Positions 1 to 55,176 of a stretch of 64,000 nucleotides of DNA are shown piece by piece. The translations under genes and the position numbers were made by a program. The notes beneath the pieces are model-generated. The model worked only from the letters and a program-made list of their open reading frames with translations, did no database searches and was not told the origin of the DNA. The stretch spans positions 62,001-126,000 of the forward strand of contig JALMLS010000573.1 in NCBI GenBank assembly GCA_038496445.1. Reading direction: 5' to 3'. Numbering within the stretch: position 1 is the first letter of the stretch; the number at the start of each line of letters is the position of its first letter. This DNA is from Trichosphaerium sp. ATCC 40318. Its lineage: Eukaryota; Protista; Tubulinea.

Positions 1-2144
1 ACCACCGGGAACATCAATTTCAAAATGAATGGTTATCTTAGAGCTCATGGTAATACCACACATAGTGTTGAAATAATCGGAAAGAATATAAGAAGGACAA
101 CGCTTGGTGATGATTATACATTTAGCAATGCAATCAATATCCAATACGGAGATCTTTCAAACTTGGCTTTCTTCACACGAAGTACAAAGGTTAACAATAT
201 CAAATGCGAAGACGTTAATATTATAGTTAACGCACCTGTCGAAGACGGATACAGTTTTGTTCAAATGAGAGAATCAACTATAAGCTATACCTCCAAGGAA
301 CTTATACTTTTTGATGATAGTACTTTCTTCAACACCCAGATACTTCCTATTTTTTATCATTACGATAAACCTTCAATAGTGTTCCGCAGCAGTATCTTCT
401 CAACTGATGATTCTTTTAAAATACAAGCTCATCCTATCCTCGCTTCTGTTTACCTCTCTAAAAGTACATGGAACACAAAAGGTATTGGAAAGAATATTAT
501 TATCTCTCATGCTATTCACTCAAACATAACAATAAACAGTCCACGTGATAAACACAACGCTATGACGATATACCCAATCGAAATAACTTTTTCAACGTTC
601 ACAGTAACTAATACAGATATAACCATTCAATTCTGTATTCTACCATCACGTGACAATGGTTGTGATTACTGTGGACTCGATTTTAGCTATAACACTTTGG
701 ATGCCGATAAACGCTCATCAATATCCATCTTTAAAAAGAAAGTCAGTCTGAGCGAAGTTTCTGATAATATTCTTGTTTCATCCAATATATTCTTGTACAA
801 TTCATTAGGAGTTATGTCATTCAACAACACTTTTTCGCCTTCACGTGATGATAGTACGAATAACGGAGTATTGACATTTACTGGGATCTTGTACCAAAGC
901 AGAATCAACAATATGAAGGTAAACATACAAGGATCAATAGAACAATCTTCTTTGTTAAACTCTACAATTAACTTGATAGATGCGGTCAATGCATACTTAG
1001 GAAGTAATTATTGGGGTACAACAAACTTGACAGATATCAAATCAAGAGTTTGTGACGTACACTGTAACGCTTCAAAAGGGTTGGCTACTTTCGAACCTAT
1101 ACTTTCACTTCCTTACATGTCTCCTGTTACCCCTTCCCCTCGAGCTCCTACAACAACACCATCGCCAACAACAATCCCTGCTGTACCAAGTGCTGTACCA
1201 CCTACAGAATCGCCTCCATATCATTCGCCGAATACAAATACAACAGCTCCAACATATAACACAACAGCTCCTACAACACCAGGTCCAACAACAATTCCTG
1301 CTGTACCAAGTGCTGTACCACCTACAGAATCGCCGCCATATCATTCGCCGAATACAAATACAACAGCGCCAACATACAACACAACAGCTCCTACAACACC
1401 AGGCCAACAACAATTCCTTCTGTACCAAGTGCTGTACCACCTACGGAATCGCCTCCATTTCATTCGCCGAATACAAATACAACAGCGCCGACATACAACA
1501 CAACAGCTCCTACAACAATACCGTCTGTTCCAAGTGCTGTACCACCTACGGAATCGCCTCCATATTATTCACCGAACACAAATACAACAGCTCCAACATA
1601 CAATACCACAGCACCAACTGAGGCACCATATTACAACACTACGGCCCCTACAACACCTACAAGTACGCCTGCGAGGCAACCCATAACTCGTGCGTCCTTA
1701 TTGTTTAGATGACTAATACTAACCTACACCACAGCGCCAACATCAACACAGCCACCTGCTAAACCACATCCTCCAGCCATCGCACCGTCACTTCCTCCAT
1801 TTGCTCCACCGAGCACATCCCCGCCCACACATTCCTCTCCACCAAATGTGAATCCTGGCACACCAACAACAATAGTACCATCGTTTAGTCCCACACATTC
1901 TCCTCCACCTACTGTGAATCCTGGCATACCTACAACAACGGAACCTTCGTTTAGTCCCACGAAAAAACCCACGATCACTCCAACTTCAGCTACAACAAAA
2001 TCTGGTCATTCTGGTTTAGTGCTTGGATTAGTAGCTGGTATTTTGTCTCTGATTATAGTAGTACTTGGTATTGTCGTTGCTATACTTATTTTCAAGTTAT
2101 CAAAAGGGAGACAAACAGGAGAGGAGTTCCAAGGTTTGATTTGA
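1..2144 (+). CDS. Type I membrane surface protein (probably 5'-partial): beta-helix-like ectodomain, Pro/Thr stalk, TM helix, short tail; 1-nt frameshift at ~1404
   Basis: Open frame from the window start; motif NYWGTTNLTDIKSRVCD..GLATFEPIL; PT repeats; intron ~1690-1734 (GTGCGT..CAG); hydrophobic GLVLGLVAGILSLIIVVLGIVVAILIF before TGA at 2144. Confidence 0.7.
1165..1620 (+). repeat. ~120-bp coding tandem repeat (PTTIPAVPSAVPPTESPPYHSPNTNTTAPTYNTTAPTTPG), ~4 units
   Basis: Units begin near 1165, 1285, 1404 and 1510. Confidence 0.9.
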
Positions 2145-2587
2145 TGGCACTTTGAAATGATTGTCAAATAAATATATCATATACTCTGCCTCAGCTTTTT
2201 CTGTCTCTACACTTTTTACTCATTTTTGCTTTCTATTTGTATATTTTAGATCACGTGCCACCGATACACAGCACGTGAACGTTTTGCATTCTGTGATGTT
2301 CTGAAAAAGTAAGTTGTAAAATGTTTCAAAGTGAATTCTAGAATTCTCTTTGACAGCGACAGTCAGAGCGTTTAGCTAGAGTATAGAACAACGAGGCGTA
2401 TAACATACTGTAGCATAAATAACCTTTCGTAAACTCACTTGCGTTGTTTAGTTGTTTGAGCCCAAACCTAGCTTGTGAGGTTGCATCTCGATATCTAAAA
2501 ATACATCACAAAGAAAGGCAACGACTGCCATAGTTATCATTACCATACAAGGACCATAACAACTCAGAAACAGTATATACATACGTA

Positions 2588-3493
2588 ATGCTTTCAAATA
2601 CTAAGAGGATAGGCAATAACCAAACTGTGACAACTTGCACACTCATCGAACTACCAATTGAAATGATAGTTTATATTTTTGACTTTGTAACCTCTACTGC
2701 AAACGTATCTACAGTTTCCCGTCTTTTTCGAGATATTGTGGATAAATACGTCGGTTACAACGATATTTTCATTACAAATGAAGAACAGTTTGCCATGTTG
2801 TGTGGTGGACCTTTACTGAAGAACACAGCAATCCATGTTAAGATGCAATGTGTCAAACCTGAATTGTTTCGCTTTCTTGAAGGTGTACATACCATTTCCT
2901 TATGGGGTTGTAAGGAGGGTGTTATAGACGAATGTATAGCACCTTTAGCCGGAGTACACACTATTGATATTCATCATACAAATATAACAGATAGAGCACT
3001 AAAGATTTTGGTTGGAGTACATACAATAAGCGTGGCACAATGTAAAAACCTTACAGATGATGGTATTAAGTCTCTTGCCGGTGTACATTCTATTGACTTG
3101 ACAGGTACTAAAGTAACAGATAATGGTTTAAAGGCATTGGCGGGAGTACACACAATTGATTTATCAAATTGCCGGAGAGTTACAGATGAAGGAGTCAAAG
3201 CTTTAGCAGGAGTACACACAATCAACTTGTGGAATTGTAAAAAAGTCACAGATGAAGGGTTCAAGGCTCTTTCTGGAGCTTACAATATTGGTTTATCTAG
3301 TACAAATGTAACAGACGATGGCCTGAAGGCGTTGGTAGGAGTACACACTATAAGTATAGCGTACTGTGACGCAGTTACTGATAAAGGAATTAACGCTCTG
3401 TCAAGCTCACATAGTATTCTATTATCAGAAACGATGGTGACAGGATGTTTAAAGGAATTTGATGAGTCTGAAACCATTTATTACTTCATCTGA
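2588..3493 (+). CDS. Intronless F-box/leucine-rich repeat protein
   Basis: F-box-like LIELPIEMIVYIFDFV..VSRLFRDIV followed by ~9 GVHTIxLxxCxxVTDxGxKAL repeats. Confidence 0.85.
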   Translation: MLSNTKRIGNNQTVTTCTLIELPIEMIVYIFDFVTSTANVSTVSRLFRDIVDKYVGYNDIFITNEEQFAMLCGGPLLKNTAIHVKMQCVKPELFRFLEGVHTISLWGCKEGVIDECIAPLAGVHTIDIHHTNITDRALKILVGVHTISVAQCKNLTDDGIKSLAGVHSIDLTGTKVTDNGLKALAGVHTIDLSNCRRVTDEGVKALAGVHTINLWNCKKVTDEGFKALSGAYNIGLSSTNVTDDGLKALVGVHTISIAYCDAVTDKGINALSSSHSILLSETMVTGCLKEFDESETIYYFI

Positions 3494-16384: not shown

Positions 16385-17573
16385 AACAGGCAGAAAAAAA
16401 TTGTAAAACGTTCGAAAAAGTTTACAACCAAATAATAGCGAAATACCTCGCACACCAACAAAGGTATTATCATAACACCAGAATTGTAAGGAGAACAAAA
16501 ATGTTATTATTTAATAACGAGAACCAGTATACTGTTCATATCTTTTCGCCACATGAGGAGCCATAGACTTTATTATAATTCTCACAATTTTAGGGTATTA
16601 CACAAGCACTTTCGCACAATGGTGCGTAGCAGTGGCTATTGGACTGGTTTTATTTGCGTTTAACACTTGGTTTTTATACCGAGGCTGTGGTATGCGTATA
16701 AACATAAATAAAGCCGTCAGTGAAACAAGCTAATGCCTGAATGAAGAAATACCTCAGTTGGAGTACATCTCTGGAACACAACCTCATAGGAGTCTCAGTA
16801 CTTACCACCGACTGCAGTGTTAAAGACAGAGTAGCTACTGGCGCAGTTGTTGGATGATAATTAAGACAGTATTCCATATTAACTCAAACAGTTCTGAACT
16901 CGAGGCTATTGAGATAGAGATCAGTACATCATAGTCTGAATCTCCCATTTTTATTGTCACAGATTCTTTTAATTCAAAAAATTACAGATGATTTTTTTTT
17001 GAGTCGACTCCGTGTTCTCAAAAAAAGTCGAGTTGAGTTGAGTCGGACCGTTAACAGTACTAATTGTTGTATCTCATCATATCATATTGTTTGCTTTCAG
17101 AGTCACCTTTTTGCGTTTGTTTTCATAGGCAACCTAAAGCATGTAACTTTCTTAGAAGAAAGAGAATTAATTGTCCTAACCCTTATTGTTCGCTATGCCA
17201 AGGGTCAGCTGAGAACAATTGTCAAAGGTCAACAACAATCCCTTTGTTTCTAACTCTTTCCAATTACTGTATAGAGTTAGGGCGTCTCTTTATTCAAAGT
17301 TACAAGCAAGTACAAGTATAGACTATTCTTATAGAAGACGACATCTGTGTGGACACGCTGATTGAGCAAAAAAGGCTTGGCAAGGTAGTAAACCAGTTTA
17401 TTTAAGAATATGGATTTCTGGGTGATTCTTCTCAGGAACAGGCATTCAAAGAGGCTCAAAGTTGGATTACAGATGAACTGTTGGGCATATACCAACATAT
17501 TGGGTCGGTGTAAAGCATCAGTGAAAGTCGGCTCAGCACTTTTTTTTTCAACGCGTTTCAATGAAAACCAAGC

Positions 17574-19322: not shown

Positions 19323-22300
19323 TTACTTTGCTGTACTTTCAAGGAGAGCTATTTTTGCCAGAAGAATGGTATTCCTCTCCTTTAGGCTAGTGTTGTCTCG
19401 CATTAGATCTTGGACGCTTTCCTTGAGATTGATAATGGTTTTCTGTGAATTCTGATGAAGTTCAGCCAGGCTCTTCTGTAATTTCTCTACCTTGCTGTTT
19501 GATTCTTGTAATTCTAGTTCGAGATTGACATAATTATAACTTGACTGTTCATCATCAGTTGAATCATCATGGGCAGCCCACAGTTTTCTAGTACAAAACT
19601 TAAGTTTAAAAGAAAAGAGATATAAAATTATACCGGTTAGAAATAAAAGTGTCGTCAGAATCAGATAGTTCATCAGATAGCTCGCCAGCTGAACCATCAA
19701 TATCTACCTTTGAAGCTTGATCTTCAGTTTGTTCATTATCGCCTTTCTCTTTCTTTGTCTTTTTATCAACTTTCTTGGCTTTTGAAGTTCTACGTTTTTT
19801 TGTACGTTTTTTACGTTCAACTTTGATGATGTACCGAGCAACAGCTTGAGTATCTAAAATAGTGTTTGTTTTTTCAATTGTATTGCTGAGTGTACCTTGT
19901 GCCACTACCAGCTCATCGTATACTGCATCTTCAAGTTTATCTGGTGGCAGAAGTTTACCAGCGCGGTCTACCAATGCATAGTGACTTTGATAGCCTGGTT
20001 TTATTGGCCTTCCGTGCAAGCTTTCATTCAAGGTTTTGGTACCATCAGTCTCATATACAAGGGGATCATGCTTTTTATCAAGTAAGTAAAGAATATCTAC
20101 ATCAATATTATTGTTTGCTTACTGGATAAACGTTCCCAGGAGTAACAAGACTTAAAACCAGTGTTTTAAAAGTTCTTCCTTTTAAATCATATGAAGTAGC
20201 ATACCGTATGCTTCTCTATTGCCGAAAATGAATATTGACCACCTGCAAAAATTGGGTAATAACGTACAGTGAAGTATATCCCTTGACCATAGTATCCAGC
20301 ATCTAAAGAACTCACAGTTCCAAAACCAGCCTTTACAATACTGTAAGCTGCTTCTTCGCTTGTTCCATGGACCATCAATATCACTGGTAACTAAATAAAA
20401 TGTTTGTAGTGCACGAGAACCAAGAACATTACCTTATCTTTTTTTTCAGTATAACAATCATTAAAAGTAGTGAAGGCATTGCACTTTTGGTACAGTCTCT
20501 TTGTATGCCTTGTAGATACTTTCTTTCCAATTTTTTTGTTTAAACAACTTGGGCAGTTCTCTAGTAGGTGCATGTTTAGAATCACAAAAATGCCTATGAA
20601 GTGTGGAGCAACCGTACTGATGTCTGTGTGTCAGTATTTCGTTGATTCGACCAAAGTTTTCTGTCAAGATGTCATTATAAACGAGAGTCGCTTCAACGAT
20701 ATTGTATTTGTCATAGCCGTGTAGCTTTGACATCTCCTGTTTGAGGATGTTGAATTCTCTGACAGCCACTTTGTCGTTTTCATCGAGGAGATTCAGTGTT
20801 TTGTAGTGTGTCGCCTTTGCAACAATGCCTCTTTTTATAATATAAGTATTAATAAAAACTAATTGAACGCACGTGTTAGAGCTATTCCAATTATTTGCAA
20901 AATACAATCGCGGATTTAAACTCCATGCGTTTTCACCTTTTAATCCTTTTGAAAACTTTTTTTAGTATTATATCACCACATGCTTCTTACCTTCAGTACA
21001 CTCTTCTTTTAAGGAATCATCTTGACTGTTATTAACCCAAGCATCATTGGGCATATCATGCAGAATACCTCGCATTAATTGCCCATCTTGTTTCCAGAAT
21101 TCCTGTAGAAAAAGAAAGTTGTTTGTAGTGTATACGTTAACAGTGAAGATATCGTACTGGAGACAATACAACTTTGGGATCGCATGCAGAACAAATTAAA
21201 TGACAAATGCCTTTTTCCATTGCCAGTTTGAAATAATACCATGTTGGCTAAACGTTGTATGGTTAATTTAAGGTATTGGTATTCAATAAAGTGTACCAAA
21301 CGGTGAAGCCATTCTTCAAACTCTTTTCTCTCCTCTACGTTGACATTTTGTGAATAGTGCTTTTTACAGTATCTCCACAGTGGATGGCATTGTTTACCAC
21401 TTGGACAGTATTTTAAGAAAGTTATGAATTTTTCAACAGCTGAGGGTGTATTTGATACCACTTCTCTAATTAAAATGAGCATAAAGTATTGCCACTTTCT
21501 TTGGCACGGAGTTACTACTTACAGTGTTAGCTATTATTTCACCAAATTTTTTTGAAATGTGCCCAATACCTGAATCCTTGTTGGTTTTACTTTCATCAAT
21601 AGTATCAATATTATTTGCGTTTGGTTTGATTAAATTCAACATTAGCATTGATATTTTGTCAAAAACTCAAATGATAGTAAATAAACACAGTTTTTATCTC
21701 ATTTGTAATATTACCTGTGTAAATCAAAGCTGTGTTTCCATATTTATCAACAACTTCAATATTGGCGTTGGCATTGAGTAATGTTGATACAACTTCATTG
21801 TGTCCATGTTGTACTAAATAGTAGAGTGAGATATGTACATGTTGTGTATCTCATCATATCATGTTACCTGCATATATTAAAGCTGTCTTTCCATCTTCAT
21901 CAACAACATCAATATTGGCGTTGGCGTTTAGTAAGGTTGATACAACTTTATTGTGTCCTTTTTGTGCTAAATAGTAGAGTGAGATATGTACATGTTGTAT
22001 CTCATCATATCATGTTACCTGCACATATCAAAGCTGTCTTTCCATCTTCATCAACAGCATCAATATTGGCGTTGGCGTTGAGTAAGATTGATACAACTTC
22101 ATTGTGCCCTTCTTGTGCTAAATAGTAGAATGAGATATGTACATGTTGTATCTCATCATATCATGTTACCTGCATATATTAAAGCTGTCTTTCCACCTTT
22201 ATCAACAGCATCAACATTAGCGTTGGCGTTGAGTAAGATTGATACAACTTCATTGTGCCCATGCCATGCTAAATAGTAGAGTGAAATATGTACATGCTGT

Positions 22301-23475
22301 ATCTCATCATATCATGTTACCTGCCCATATTAAAGTTGTACTTCCATGTAAAGTAACAGCATCAACATTAGCATTGGCATTAAGTAAGGTTGATACAACT
22401 TCATTGTGCCCATTCCATGCTAAATAGTAGAGTGAGATATGTACATGCTGTATTTCATCATATCATGTTACCTGCATATATTAAAGCTGCCCTTCCATAT
22501 GTATCAACAGAATGAACATTAGCATTGGCATTGAGTAAGGTTGATACAACTTCATTGTGTCCTTCCCATGCTAAATAGTAGAATGAGATATGTACATGTT
22601 GTATCTCATCATATCATGTTACCTGCATACATTAAAGCTGTCATTCCACTATATTTATCAACAGAATCAACATTAGCATTGGCGTTGAGTAAGATTGATA
22701 CAACTTCATTGTGTCCTTTCCATGCTAAATAGTAGAGTGAGATATGAACATGTTGTATCTCATCATATCATGTTACCTGCCCGTATTAAAGCTGTCATTC
22801 CACTATATCCATCAACAACATCAATATTAGCATTGGCGTTGGCGTTTAGTAAGGTTGATACAACTTCATTGTGTCCTTTTTGTGCTAAATAGCAGAGTGA
22901 GATATGTACATGTTGTATCTCATCATATCATGTTACCTGCATATATTAAAGCTGCCCTTCCATATGTATCAACAGAATGAACATTAGCATTGGCGTTGAG
23001 TAAGGTTGATACAACTTCATTGTGTCCTTCCCATGCTAAATAGTAGAATGAGATATGTACATGTTGTATCTCATCATATCATGTTACCTGCATACATTAA
23101 AGCTGTCTTTCCACCTGCATCAACAGAATCAACATTAGCATTGGCTTTGAGTAAGATTGATACAACTTCATTGTGTCCTTCCCATGCTAAATAGTAGAGT
23201 GAGATATACATGTACATGTTGTATCTCATCATATCATGTTACCTGCCCGTATTAAAGCTGTCATTCCATCGTTATCAATAGAATCAACATTAGCACTGGC
23301 ATTGATTAATGTTGAAACAACTTCATTGTAGCCATTTGTTGCTACACTTTGTCAACTTTTTGCTTAGTAAGCATTACAAACCTGCAAAAGAAAACACAAT
23401 ATCAATTATGGGGATGTTGTTGGTCGGTTCTTCCTGTTCTAAATGTTGGTTTTTGTCATTCTGCGATTCTGTCAT
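19323..23475 (-). CDS. Ankyrin-repeat (11 units) + helical linker + H-Y-E ADP-ribosyltransferase (PARP-like) + basic/acidic/coiled-coil tail; apparent frameshift at ~20490
   Basis: ATG at 23475; spliced AAxxGHNEVVSxLLNANANVDxxDxxGxTALIxA repeats; MVHGTSEEAAYSIVKAGF..AGYYGQGIYFT..RYATSY..VTPGNVYP..GYQSHYALV..YDELVV. Confidence 0.85.
21715..23341 (-). repeat. 151-bp exon+intron tandem array (99-nt ankyrin exon + 52-nt intron)
   Basis: Donor motif gttacctg at ~21863, 22014, 22165, 22316, 22467, 22618, 22772, 22932, 23083 and 23238. Confidence 0.95.
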
Positions 23476-51167: not shown

Positions 51168-53072
51168 TCAAGCTTCTGTGCGTACAGCAGATGTTGCTAC
51201 GGACTTAATGGTTAATTCTGTCGAGTTTACAGATCCTTTTTTAGCGTTGTTAGGTGGTTGGAATGAATACACCTTAAAGAAGTTATTTATACAACCAAAT
51301 ACGAAAAAAATAGGAACAATGTACTTGTAGGATAGATAACAACATTTGAAGCAAATAAAATACGCCTGTACTCATTGTAGTAGCAATGACAGCCGTGTTT
51401 TTACGGGTAGGTATAGCCAGTATGATAATACTTAAAAGAAGTAAAGACATCAGAACAGTGTTGGCACTCATACGGAAACGTATCTCGAAAGGGAATTAGA
51501 TCTAATGAAAGATAATTTTGCTTTGAAATTCAAAGAAAAAAAAAGGTATGTGGTACTTTTCTCAGCGCTGTTTTCGATGTCTCCTTATCTGTTATTCTGG
51601 ATAACTGCTGGTATATCTGGATTAATACTTAGTTCATACTTATACTAAGGATGTTTGAATCACGTGCTTGATAGAGGATAAACGTGCTGTAAATCAAAGT
51701 TGTCAAGTTAGTGATAAAGTTAAGAACATGAGGCAACAATGTTACAATTGTTGGCGACTCGTTGGTAGATATGCGTGCAATCGATGATCCCACTTCAAAC
51801 AAGACTAACACGGCGAACAGAAAAAAAAATAGAGCTCTAAAGCGTTTTGTATGCAAGAACTTATGTCCAATCAAACCTTTATGAACTAGAGTCTCGTGCC
51901 TAAACATGGTGTTACAGCATAAAGGAGTAATTGATTCTTTGAGGTACCAAAACATTGTTATCATTACGTTTGTTATTGTAGTGAAGGGTGTGCTGATTGT
52001 TAGGAAGAAGGTATCTGCTTGATAGTGGTATAAACGATGAGATCCTAGAATGTTTACAATACTAACTAGTTTCACTATTTTTTTTGTTATTGATAAGTTA
52101 GGAGTGGATCTTGGCGTACAAACGCTTGCAAAAAGCTCGATGGATATAGCCATGACTCCAAGAGATAGTCCACAATATCCTTTAGAATAATATTGGTAGA
52201 ATCTACGGAAGTATAAGACTGTATATGTAGAGTGGTTCAACAGACTATTTCATTTCAGTGTACCTCAATAAACAAAGTGCTATTACACTAACGCAAAGCG
52301 CCATAAGTACAGTCTGGAATAAAGCATGCCAAACACTTGTAAAGTAATCATTACATTTGTTTCCGCCTGAACAAAAATGTGTAAGTATGATGAAAAGAGA
52401 ACTTGAGCAGGCTAAACCTGGAGTAATTTCTATCTCCAAAGTAGTGTTTGAATATAGTTTTGGTGTGTCGTCAGTCTGTATTTCAATTATTGGCGTACTC
52501 AATTGGCGAGAAGCTTGCTCTTTAACAGGCGGGTTGGTAAAGAGATAGTAAATCGACTTTCTTTGAAATTAAATAATAAAAAAATAATACAATCACGTGA
52601 CATGGCGATTGTTTTAATAAAATTCCCAATTGTGCCATTAAAGTATTCACGTGATCTACTATTAAAAGTTTTCTATGGTACCATAGAAAAAATACATAGA
52701 GCATCCTGTACTCATGTATGTGCTTGACCATGCGAGTAATACCGCTTTGTATTGTTTACTAGCTTCTATTATAACACCACTTGTCAACTCTGAGTGAAAT
52801 AAAAGAACTGCGTCTCCTTTATTTGCGTTACAATGTATGGGAAACAATAAGACTGTAAACAGGTGGTTGAGATTAGCCGGAGAAACAGTAGTACCGTTTA
52901 ATCCACTTTTGTATCGCACAAGAGAAAAGTTGTGGGCTGAAACAAATGGTGTTTCGTTTATCCATTCAGATGAAGGTATTGTTGTTCCAATTAAAGGACC
53001 AGAAAGAACGCGTAATGCGCAATACGAAGCGGAAACGAAAAGAAATAGAATAAATGGCGTAATTACGCCCAT
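51168..53072 (-). CDS. Signal peptide + PA-like ectodomain + 7TM protein, paralog 1
   Basis: KAVLLAWS..G..TPIIEIQTDD..LEIEITP PA-like pattern followed by about seven hydrophobic segments; inverted paralog at 58131-59973. Confidence 0.7.
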
Positions 53073-53348
53073 TATCGTATGTAGGTGTCGCGTGCTTTGC
53101 AGTATTAAAGTATTGGTTTGATTTGAAGCATGTTAAGTTAGATTTATTTTCTTATTTAGTTCGAGTTTGTGCAATACTTCACTAACAAGTACCGTGTGCA
53201 TTACGTAAATCTTGACCCTTACAAATCTCAATACAACCCACAACCAATATGGCTAATACACTAAAACGGAACAACCCAACTTTTAGTTTTATGTAGGTAT
53301 ACAAAGCTATATTAAGCGTATTCAAATGTAGAACAGATCAGGTTTGTT

Positions 53349-54528
53349 TTAATACTGGTACCATTCTGTCAAGAAATCTACTATAGCATCTCCTATATCA
53401 TCTCCGTAGTCAGGTATAGCAGATGACCTCCGTAAATGAAAGGGACTTTCTATTTGAATAGCATCAACTGTGCCTGAGTCTCTACTTCCGTGATTTCTTA
53501 CAATAAAACCACCAGTGTAGTATCCGTATGACAAAGGCTTTGGAGTGCCGGGAGAAGGAACAACGTAATAGCCGCTATTCTCTAGTAGAGCTCCTAGGCT
53601 TTCAATACCTCTGATTATTTGAGAAAATGGAGTTGAAGAAAAAGTTGCAGCAAGGTTAGAAATACTTCCTTTCGAAGAAATAGCGTCTAAACCAGCATCT
53701 ACAGGATTAAAACCAAGTTAGTTTTTACGTCGGTTTCTATACAAATCACGTGATATACACGTTGGCGTACCGTCTTTGTTTAAGTTAGTTCTTGACACTG
53801 CGTAGCCAAGCTCAACCCATTGTTGTGAGTGGCTTGATACACCATGAACGTCAATCAAAAGACCAGCTCCGTATTCTTGAACGACTCTGTCTTTGGCGCA
53901 ATTAATAAAAGCATGGTATTTATCCCTGGTTTAAATATTACTTCTTGATAACTCCTATATATAGTACCATGCTGCGAGAGCATCCGCGTTCGTAGATTGA
54001 GTAGAATCTGTTCTGTCACGGTTCATATCGACCTATTTTTAGAATTAACGTCATTTCGGAGTTTGTATACTATTACCTTCGCTCTCCTTATGTATGCCAC
54101 AATTGTATGTGTTGTATTACCTGTTAAGCTTGAAATTCGATTAGCAATGCGTTCAGCCAAATTTATTGTTCGGGTGTCAGCACTTGTTGATCCTAAATAA
54201 AGAATCAATTGCTATGTTTTACATAAAGAACTGTTTGACTGCTTACCGGAGGTTCTGTCTGGGATACTGGAAGGTGCTATTAACCCACCGTGTGGGACAG
54301 AGAGTATAATTGGAAGGTTTCCTGTTGTATATTTGACATATTGGTTACTGCCATCGTAGTTGATATCACCAGCGCTATGGGACTGTAGCGGACATGGATC
54401 GAAAGAGCAATAGCAATAAGATATTAATACAATACCTAATTGTATAAAAGAGTTAGGATTGGTAGGTAGAAATATGTAGTGTTATTCGTAGCCGTACCGA
54501 AAATTAAGAGGTGTGTTGTCGTTGGCAT
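53349..54528 (-). CDS. N-formylglutamate amidohydrolase (FGase)-like protein with signal peptide
   Basis: GNLPIILSVPHGG..ADTRT..DMNRD..YHAFI..LLIDVHG..VELGY..YYTGGFIVRNHG..DAIQIESP. Confidence 0.8.
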
Positions 54529-54942
54529 GAGTAGCATTTATTAATTGTTTACTTAACTTGCTTTTTCAATGAAATGATAAGACTAGCCATTTTGGCAACG
54601 TCTTATCTCCATGAAATGATTTAAAGACAACGTGTATTATTGGGATACAATTGATTCGAAGCACATACAATGGACACTTGGCATTGTTTTAACCATTTTA
54701 TGGTAAGTACAACTGATTCATAGTATTGCTCCACGCGGAAAACTGAGAAAAAAAGCTAATTTTCGATTTTTGAAAGTTTCAAACGTGCACTAATGCCAGG
54801 ATAAAAAGTAATAGAGCTAGTAAAGTTAAATCTCCAATACATCTTGAACTTTATTTGTATAGACCTGCTTAACATTAAAAGTGTCTCCGATATTTCTTTG
54901 TAACATAAAGATCGTGATCAAAAAGTGAGAAATAAATACCCA

Positions 54943-55176
54943 TCACACGAATATATCGTGCCATGGGACATATTCTTCACAAACTGACCAACGAAATTTA
55001 TTGCCATTTTGCCAATAGTAGGATGCACTGCCATGAAACATCATCCAAACTTCATATTGGAGAGTACCATCGTTCATATACATCTTTCCTAAATGACACT
55101 TATCGTTCTCAAACTGCCCTTTGTATTGAATAGTACCATCTGGAAGATACTTCTCTCCAGTACAATGAATTGGCAA
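54943..55176 (-). pseudogene. MORN-repeat fragment
   Basis: GEKYLPDGTIQYKGQFENDKCHLGKMYMNDGTLQYE..GSASYYWQNGNKF; degenerate, no real start codon. Confidence 0.55.

Follow-up and report, generated by a model that had tools for sequence, protein, structure and literature searches.

An ankyrin-PARP gene with a tandem array of exons and introns

We analysed a 64,000-nucleotide (nt) stretch of DNA from Trichosphaerium sp. ATCC 40318 (contig JALMLS010000573.1, positions 62,001 to 126,000 of the forward strand; hereafter the window), which contains a tandemly repeated set of exons and introns within a gene for a predicted ankyrin (ANK) repeat and PARP protein. Tandem Repeats Finder reports one array at 21711-23329, with a period of 151, 10.6 copies, 88% matches and a score of 2229. 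The array lies on the minus strand, where 99-nt exons alternate with short GT..AG introns. It is part of a 4.15-kb gene (23475-19323, minus strand), which was delineated by three-frame reading and by alignment to two colinear environmental proteins, P0001 and P0002. The order of domains in the predicted protein is an N-cap, 11 ANK repeats, a degenerate C-cap repeat, a Cys-rich region, a PARP catalytic domain, a basic/acidic linker and a coiled coil.

The preliminary description of this DNA had noted ten near-identical phase-1 introns, and a regular-expression scan of the minus strand recovers exactly this set. Eight are 52 nt long (23087-23036, 22936-22885, 22776-22725, 22622-22571, 22471-22420, 22320-22269, 22169-22118 and 22018-21967), and the outermost two are 4 and 2 nt longer (23242-23187, 56 nt; 21867-21814, 54 nt). 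All ten run from GT to AG and split a codon after its first base. Together with the nine exons that they enclose, they make up a homogeneous core at 21814-23242. Seven of these internal exons are 99 nt long (23186-23088, 23035-22937, 22570-22472, 22419-22321, 22268-22170, 22117-22019 and 21966-21868), one is 102 nt (22724-22623) and one 108 nt (22884-22777). Each encodes one ankyrin repeat and all are open, so that the reported exon indels of +3 and +9 do indeed keep the frame. One further ANK exon of 99 nt on either side brings the total to 11. The first (23341-23243) has a diverged 5' half and an array-like 3' half, and gives weak matches to Pfam Ank_4, Ank_2 and Ank; the last (21813-21715) is the most diverged of the eleven. 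When five single exons were compared with Pfam Ank (PF00023), four of them (three internal exons and the last ANK exon, matching profile positions 12-33) scored 21.5-24.7 bits against a gathering cut-off of 21.1, whereas the first ANK exon reached only 18.5 bits.

Within this array the introns are more alike than the exons, as had been reported: pairs of introns differ by 0.031 on average, and pairs of the nine internal exons by 0.143. A 39-nt intron core has eight matches in the window at three or fewer mismatches, compared with none expected from shuffles of the window. Two other features of the preliminary description need qualification. The 7-bp inverted repeat said to be present in each intron is intact in only eight of the ten, and carries a one-sided change in 22471-22420 and in 22320-22269. 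Likewise, the introns that bound the array were described as different from those inside it; this is true of the 40-nt intron on the 5' side (23381-23342), which is unrelated to the array intron, but the 49-nt intron on the 3' side (21714-21666) is a diverged homologue (only five of 2000 shuffles align as well). Retention of any of the ten array introns would introduce a stop after four codons, and a multi-repeat protein therefore requires splicing. We thus infer that the array introns are spliced.

The remainder of the gene, on the same strand, was mapped as follows. Exon 1 (23382-23475) comprises the start codon, with its ATG at 23475, and a 31-residue N-terminal half-repeat, and ends in phase 1. 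Downstream of the array lies the degenerate C-terminal capping ANK-like exon (21570-21665), followed by the Cys-rich region and the N-terminal half of the PARP domain (20491-21494, placed by tblastn), which are split by introns of about 45-57 nt that P0001 and P0002 skip. The PARP catalytic core exons occupy 19819-20390, and the C-terminal coiled-coil tail extends over 19323-19598, with the stop codon at 19325-19323. Direct reading and alignment to P0001 and P0002 place the H of an HGT motif and the Y of a GIYF motif at 20390-20268, and the E of a YDELVV motif at 20028-19819. The H-Y-E triad of a PARP catalytic domain is thus complete, and the product is predicted to be an enzyme. One window exon by itself scores 20.6 bits with Pfam PARP (PF00644), under the cut-off of 26.7; P0001 and P0002, at 30.9 and 36.5 bits, both exceed it.

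P0001 and P0002 are the only relatives of the PARP-region exon among 1.8 billion representative proteins, and both derive from JGI/IMG environmental data. They are colinear with the window gene and 44-98% identical to it exon by exon. Since they skip introns of 40-57 nt in its 3' half, they confirm the splicing pattern there and show that a length of 52 nt is nothing unusual for its introns. Residues 1-20 of P0001 align with apparent intron sequence (window 21494-21435); its contig may keep an intron at this point, or be genomic DNA with fewer introns. No sequence relative of P0001 was found in the PDB, and a search of metagenome and viral contigs with the P0001/P0002 alignment found nothing. 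A giant-virus origin of the PARP part was rejected because it has no relative among the viral contigs.

A large family of paralogous arrays

The array is not confined to the window. Across the assembly (70.3 Mb, 642 contigs, about 36% GC), at least 149 copies of the 39-nt intron core are present at three or fewer mismatches, in runs spaced by 151 bp and on many contigs. Outside the repeats, about 12 paralogues match the gene at 88-92% DNA identity, and dozens of others do so at 65-74%. We fetched 13 stretches and extracted 160 internal exons with their flanking introns, which come from 12 stretches of sequence. Not one of these exons contains a stop codon, and 154 of the 160 are exactly 99 nt long. 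Among 191 BLAST matches in the 13 stretches and the window, one of which is a partial match of only 21 nt, every full copy of the intron interrupts an ankyrin exon at one and the same phase-1 position. The last 12 nt of the intron occur 174 times compared with about 23 expected by chance, and in 131 instances the start of an ANK exon follows. In the window, 21 nt outside any ANK context (17065-17085, minus strand) are identical to the 5' part of the array intron, and may be a fragment or a coincidence.

The contig that carries the window has at least five more ANK-PARP paralogues (52527-54958, 136892-142400, 228321-230384, 253989-255756 and 327380-331103), so the family is partly clustered. 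One paralogue on this contig lies about 7 kb before the start of the window, on the opposite strand. The published draft of the Trichosphaerium sp. genome gives a mean intron length of 75 nt and mentions neither ankyrin nor PARP (PMC10521059).

Introns are as diverse as silent sites across the family

The preliminary description held that the introns are more conserved than the exons, and proposed exon synonymous sites as the standard by which this should be judged. As a neutral yardstick we used four-fold degenerate sites in the 160 units from 12 stretches. These were preferred to Nei-Gojobori (NG86) synonymous estimates (0.074 within arrays and 0.131 between them, about twice the four-fold values) because two-fold sites count transitions only. 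By this measure the pooled values are equal: mean pairwise divergence over all pairs is 0.063 for introns and 0.063 for four-fold sites. The agreement holds within arrays (0.039 and 0.036, respectively) and between them (0.066 and 0.066). Calculated per site, diversity in the intron interior is 0.042 (95% confidence interval 0.023-0.069) and that at four-fold sites 0.058 (0.024-0.097; Mann-Whitney p=0.53).

The exons appear more diverged than the introns because replacement differences persist at about ten hypervariable codons. Exon variation clusters at codons 2, 3, 5, 11, 14, 21, 24, 25, 27 and 32. Within arrays, replacement differences at these positions average 0.277, about seven times the neutral value of around 0.037, compared with 0.050 at framework codons. 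Amino-acid identity is accordingly 35% at hypervariable codons and 86% in the framework. Overall, the mean pairwise amino-acid identity between repeats is 75% in the window array and 71-80% in the others.

The positions of the hypervariable codons suggest what they might do. Pfam alignment equates exon residue n with position n+9 of the Ank profile. Six positions were reportedly randomised in designed ankyrin binders (DARPins) by Binz et al. in 2003, and, on this profile alignment, codons 2, 3, 24, 25 and 27 would correspond to five of them. Profile mapping also places codon 32 one helical turn ahead of codons 2-3 of the next repeat. The hypervariable codons thus probably line the ligand-binding face, and diversifying selection would account for their variability.

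Arrays turn over rapidly

A comparison of two nearly identical paralogues shows how quickly the arrays change. L006 (contig C277) and L010 (contig C553) share 99.2% identity in the 2.3 kb of their non-repeat part, but contain 19 and 36 ANK exons, respectively, with different residue signatures and intron alleles. Arrays must therefore turn over fast. The 36-exon array of L010 includes a block (1816-3170) whose units carry a 47-nt intron variant, shortened by a 5-nt deletion, and in which a motif of three exons recurs several times; it has the look of a higher-order tandem duplication that took place very recently. In the window array, exons 3 and 6 are one base apart and the introns that precede them are identical.

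Comparisons between loci extend this picture. Neutral divergence of the window gene from its subfamily-A paralogues is 0.079-0.083 in the non-repeat part, and neutral divergence among the arrays of subfamily A is generally 0.046-0.054. The arrays of subfamilies A and B are 0.10-0.12 apart; the rest of these genes is only 68% identical. Divergence is greatest in the repeats at the edges of the array and in the 3' bounding intron, as would be expected if exchange became weaker toward its ends. This evidence fits unequal crossing-over and gene conversion of whole units, both within and between loci. Thus the earlier suggestion that each exon and its intron form an interchangeable cassette is supported on an evolutionary scale, by the 19 and 36 exons of the near-identical pair, the three-unit duplications and the likeness of the A and B arrays.

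Probable duplication and exchange of whole units

These results suggest a model in which the array would serve as the ankyrin binding arm of a protein from a large ANK-PARP family of an amoeba-type eukaryote. Tandem duplication, unequal crossing-over and gene conversion would have built up this arm, and would still be remodelling it, by acting on a 151-bp unit that consists of one 99-nt ankyrin exon and one 52-nt intron. Because the intron belongs to the copied unit, it would be as uniform as the other neutral sites of that unit, while diversifying selection would maintain replacement differences at the roughly ten codons lining the ligand-binding face. The introns themselves would have no special role: they would be ordinary short spliceosomal introns in which the inverted repeat is incidental. 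We put the probability of this explanation as a whole at roughly three in four. The protein would have a role in recognition.

Several observations weigh against it. In the window array alone, silent diversity is about 0.13 and intron diversity 0.031, a three- to four-fold difference (permutation p=0.011; Mann-Whitney p=0.02-0.06), and this gap rests on 17 silent sites, five of them variable, compared with 52 intron sites, which is too few to outweigh the family result. The unweighted means of 11 arrays differ in the same direction (0.068 silent and 0.034 intron; paired Wilcoxon p=0.067), with silent diversity the higher in seven arrays and the lower in four. These values would leave room for introns about two-fold more conserved than neutral sites. 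Part of the gap is explained by splice signals, which take up 9-16 bases of the 52-nt intron and so somewhat lower intron diversity. In addition, perfect or near-perfect subfamily-A introns are found in decayed, frameshifted ANK remnants (L003:4890-4941, L007:2813-2864 and L005:2979-3030), of which the one in L005 has its AG acceptor changed to AA. The exon flanks of these introns are 10-23% diverged, with a value of about 12% for the perfect copies, and nearer to subfamily B. Such introns may mark short conversion tracts that end at the intron borders, but duplication and exchange of whole units leaves them unexplained. Finally, short-read polishing of the assembly could artificially weaken linkage between near-identical repeats (PMC10521059), and with it the association values given below. 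Taking these points together, we place intron conservation within about two-fold of the neutral level and see no need to assume a separate function.

The observations on diversity and on the remnant introns also speak for an extra function of the intron. According to this alternative, purifying selection keeps the intron more uniform than neutral sites as a splicing hairpin, or as a dyad for recombination or protein binding, both of which the preliminary description had raised. It could also appeal to the overlap, seen by direct reading, between the 3' arm of the inverted repeat and a branch-site-like CTCAY motif. We nevertheless consider it unlikely. Quite apart from the equality of the pooled intron and silent values, the structural evidence is unfavourable. 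The inverted repeat folds into a stem of 7-9 bp at -5.8 to -7.3 kcal/mol, but this is no more stable than dinucleotide shuffles (z of -0.4 to +0.1), and folding shows the stem to be lost in two of the ten window introns. Among 130 copies of 52 nt there are no two-sided changes of a stem pair; most changes are one-sided and break the pair, and a few give G-U wobbles. Moreover, introns shortened to 40-44 nt, from which an arm or the loop is missing, are found between in-frame, intact exons of open arrays. Rfam gave no credible match to the array intron. Given the short stem, the z values near zero and the blank Rfam search, a mirtron or other structured intronic RNA was also rejected. In L001, L004 and L007, several independent intron deletions (40, 43, 43 and 49 nt) have taken out the palindrome or an arm of the hairpin; the dyad has the appearance of a hotspot for deletion, not of a conserved element.

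A role for the dyad in recombination fares no better. In 96 exon-intron-exon triplets, the association of one variable site with another drops almost to background over 10 nt. At distances of 60-100 nt it is 0.189 within an exon and 0.195 across the intron, with a permutation null of 0.142. Since association is equal in the two situations, there is no sign that breakpoints cluster in the intron. Taken with the equal intron and silent divergence of the family, these are largely the outcomes that the preliminary description had named as refuting its proposal.

A broader possibility is that the ANK-PARP genes encode, in the germline, a set of rapidly diversifying recognition proteins comparable to an innate immune system, and that the uniform introns are used for in-frame skipping or as preferred points of exchange and so multiply the specificities that direct ADP-ribosylation. 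As a complete account this is quite unlikely. The more restricted proposal that exons are skipped combinatorially in a programmed manner, such that one gene yields many ankyrin arms of differing length and content, is more doubtful still. Internal exons of 99, 102 or 108 nt between phase-1 introns mean that any skip would remain in frame, and the splice sites are identical, so that no exon is favoured. However, the exact pattern of a spliced junction was absent from the metagenome contigs, a word-index protein search with an exon-containing open reading frame yielded no candidate, and the germline variation in about 100 paralogues with arrays of variable length already provides diversity.

It is also conceivable, though very improbable, that the assembly or its short-read polishing homogenised the repeats, exaggerating the identity of the introns and scrambling linkage. 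The published assembly was indeed made from Nanopore and PacBio reads, polished with Illumina data and subjected to haplotype reduction (PMC10521059). Against this, single-nucleotide polymorphisms and indels private to individual introns persist, and all 160 exons are open. Intron alleles are also specific to particular loci, as illustrated by a site that is T throughout L006 and by the block of 47-nt variants in L010.

Lastly, introner-like elements are near-identical short introns present in many copies per genome, some with inverted repeats, that insert at unrelated sites. Repeated insertion of such a mobile element could account for the number of copies, each with an inverted repeat, but is scarcely credible and was rejected: the full copies examined all share one homologous phase-1 site in one repeat family, none was seen in unrelated genes or in intergenic DNA with target-site duplications, their spacing of 151 bp is strict, the intron tail is followed by an ANK exon start in most cases, and even isolated copies in decayed arrays occupy the ankyrin position rather than unrelated sites.

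Relation to known systems

Ankyrin, TPR and WD repeats of fungal NLR-like (NOD-like receptor-like) proteins, such as Podospora HNWD, are kept alike by reshuffling within and between paralogues (PMC4986451, PMC2873952). The ANK repeats of this class show positive selection at a few concave binding-face positions and vary in repeat number (PMC4986451). The family described here is similar in that it combines variation in repeat number with hypervariable positions that profile mapping assigns to the binding face. It differs in several respects. Each repeat is an exon of its own, with an intron inside the repeating unit, and the host is an amoebozoan-type protist. The predicted effector is a PARP, and no NACHT or NB-ARC match was found, the 31-residue N-terminal exon leading directly into the ANK array. 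Similarity between repeats, at the amino-acid identities given above, is also below the fungal criterion of at least 85% identity over at least 100 residues.

The window gene resembles tankyrases and the clade 1A ANK-PARPs in placing an ankyrin array at the N-terminus, ahead of a PARP domain that has the H-Y-E triad. Tankyrases constitute PARP clade 4 and have a SAM domain between ANK and PARP, whereas the clade 1A proteins of Dictyostelium, fungi and ciliates have WGR and PRD domains ahead of the catalytic domain (PMC2964712). No Pfam match to SAM was found in the open reading frames of the window or in P0001 and P0002; neither WGR nor PRD was detected, Pfam finding PARP only in the latter two proteins. 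By these definitions (PMC2964712) the gene is therefore neither a tankyrase nor a clade 1A ANK-PARP, and has instead a Cys-rich region and a C-terminal coiled coil.

The organisation of the array, with one repeat per symmetric exon and the intron duplicated along with it, recalls the tandem exon duplication that Schueler and Bornberg-Bauer are said to have described in 2016 as a general route to repeat proteins. Unlike the general case, the units here are young, only a few percent apart, and number hundreds of copies at more than 15 loci.

The fungal pattern of a homogenised framework, a hypervariable face and rapid change in repeat number thus has a counterpart in a little-studied amoebozoan lineage, where it is built from exon-plus-intron cassettes and joined to a predicted ADP-ribosyltransferase. 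The family is on this account a candidate system for recognition and effector function. It is also a clean natural case of intron multiplication through tandem duplication. The negative lesson is that near-identical introns in a repeat array are not by themselves a sign of function; the appropriate yardstick is the divergence of silent sites in the same units.

Other repeats in the window

The window also contains an open frame of 553 codons (25-1686, plus strand) that is unrelated to the array. It is rich in Pro and Thr codons and has tandem repeats of 120 and 66 nt (1153-1612 and 1824-1960).

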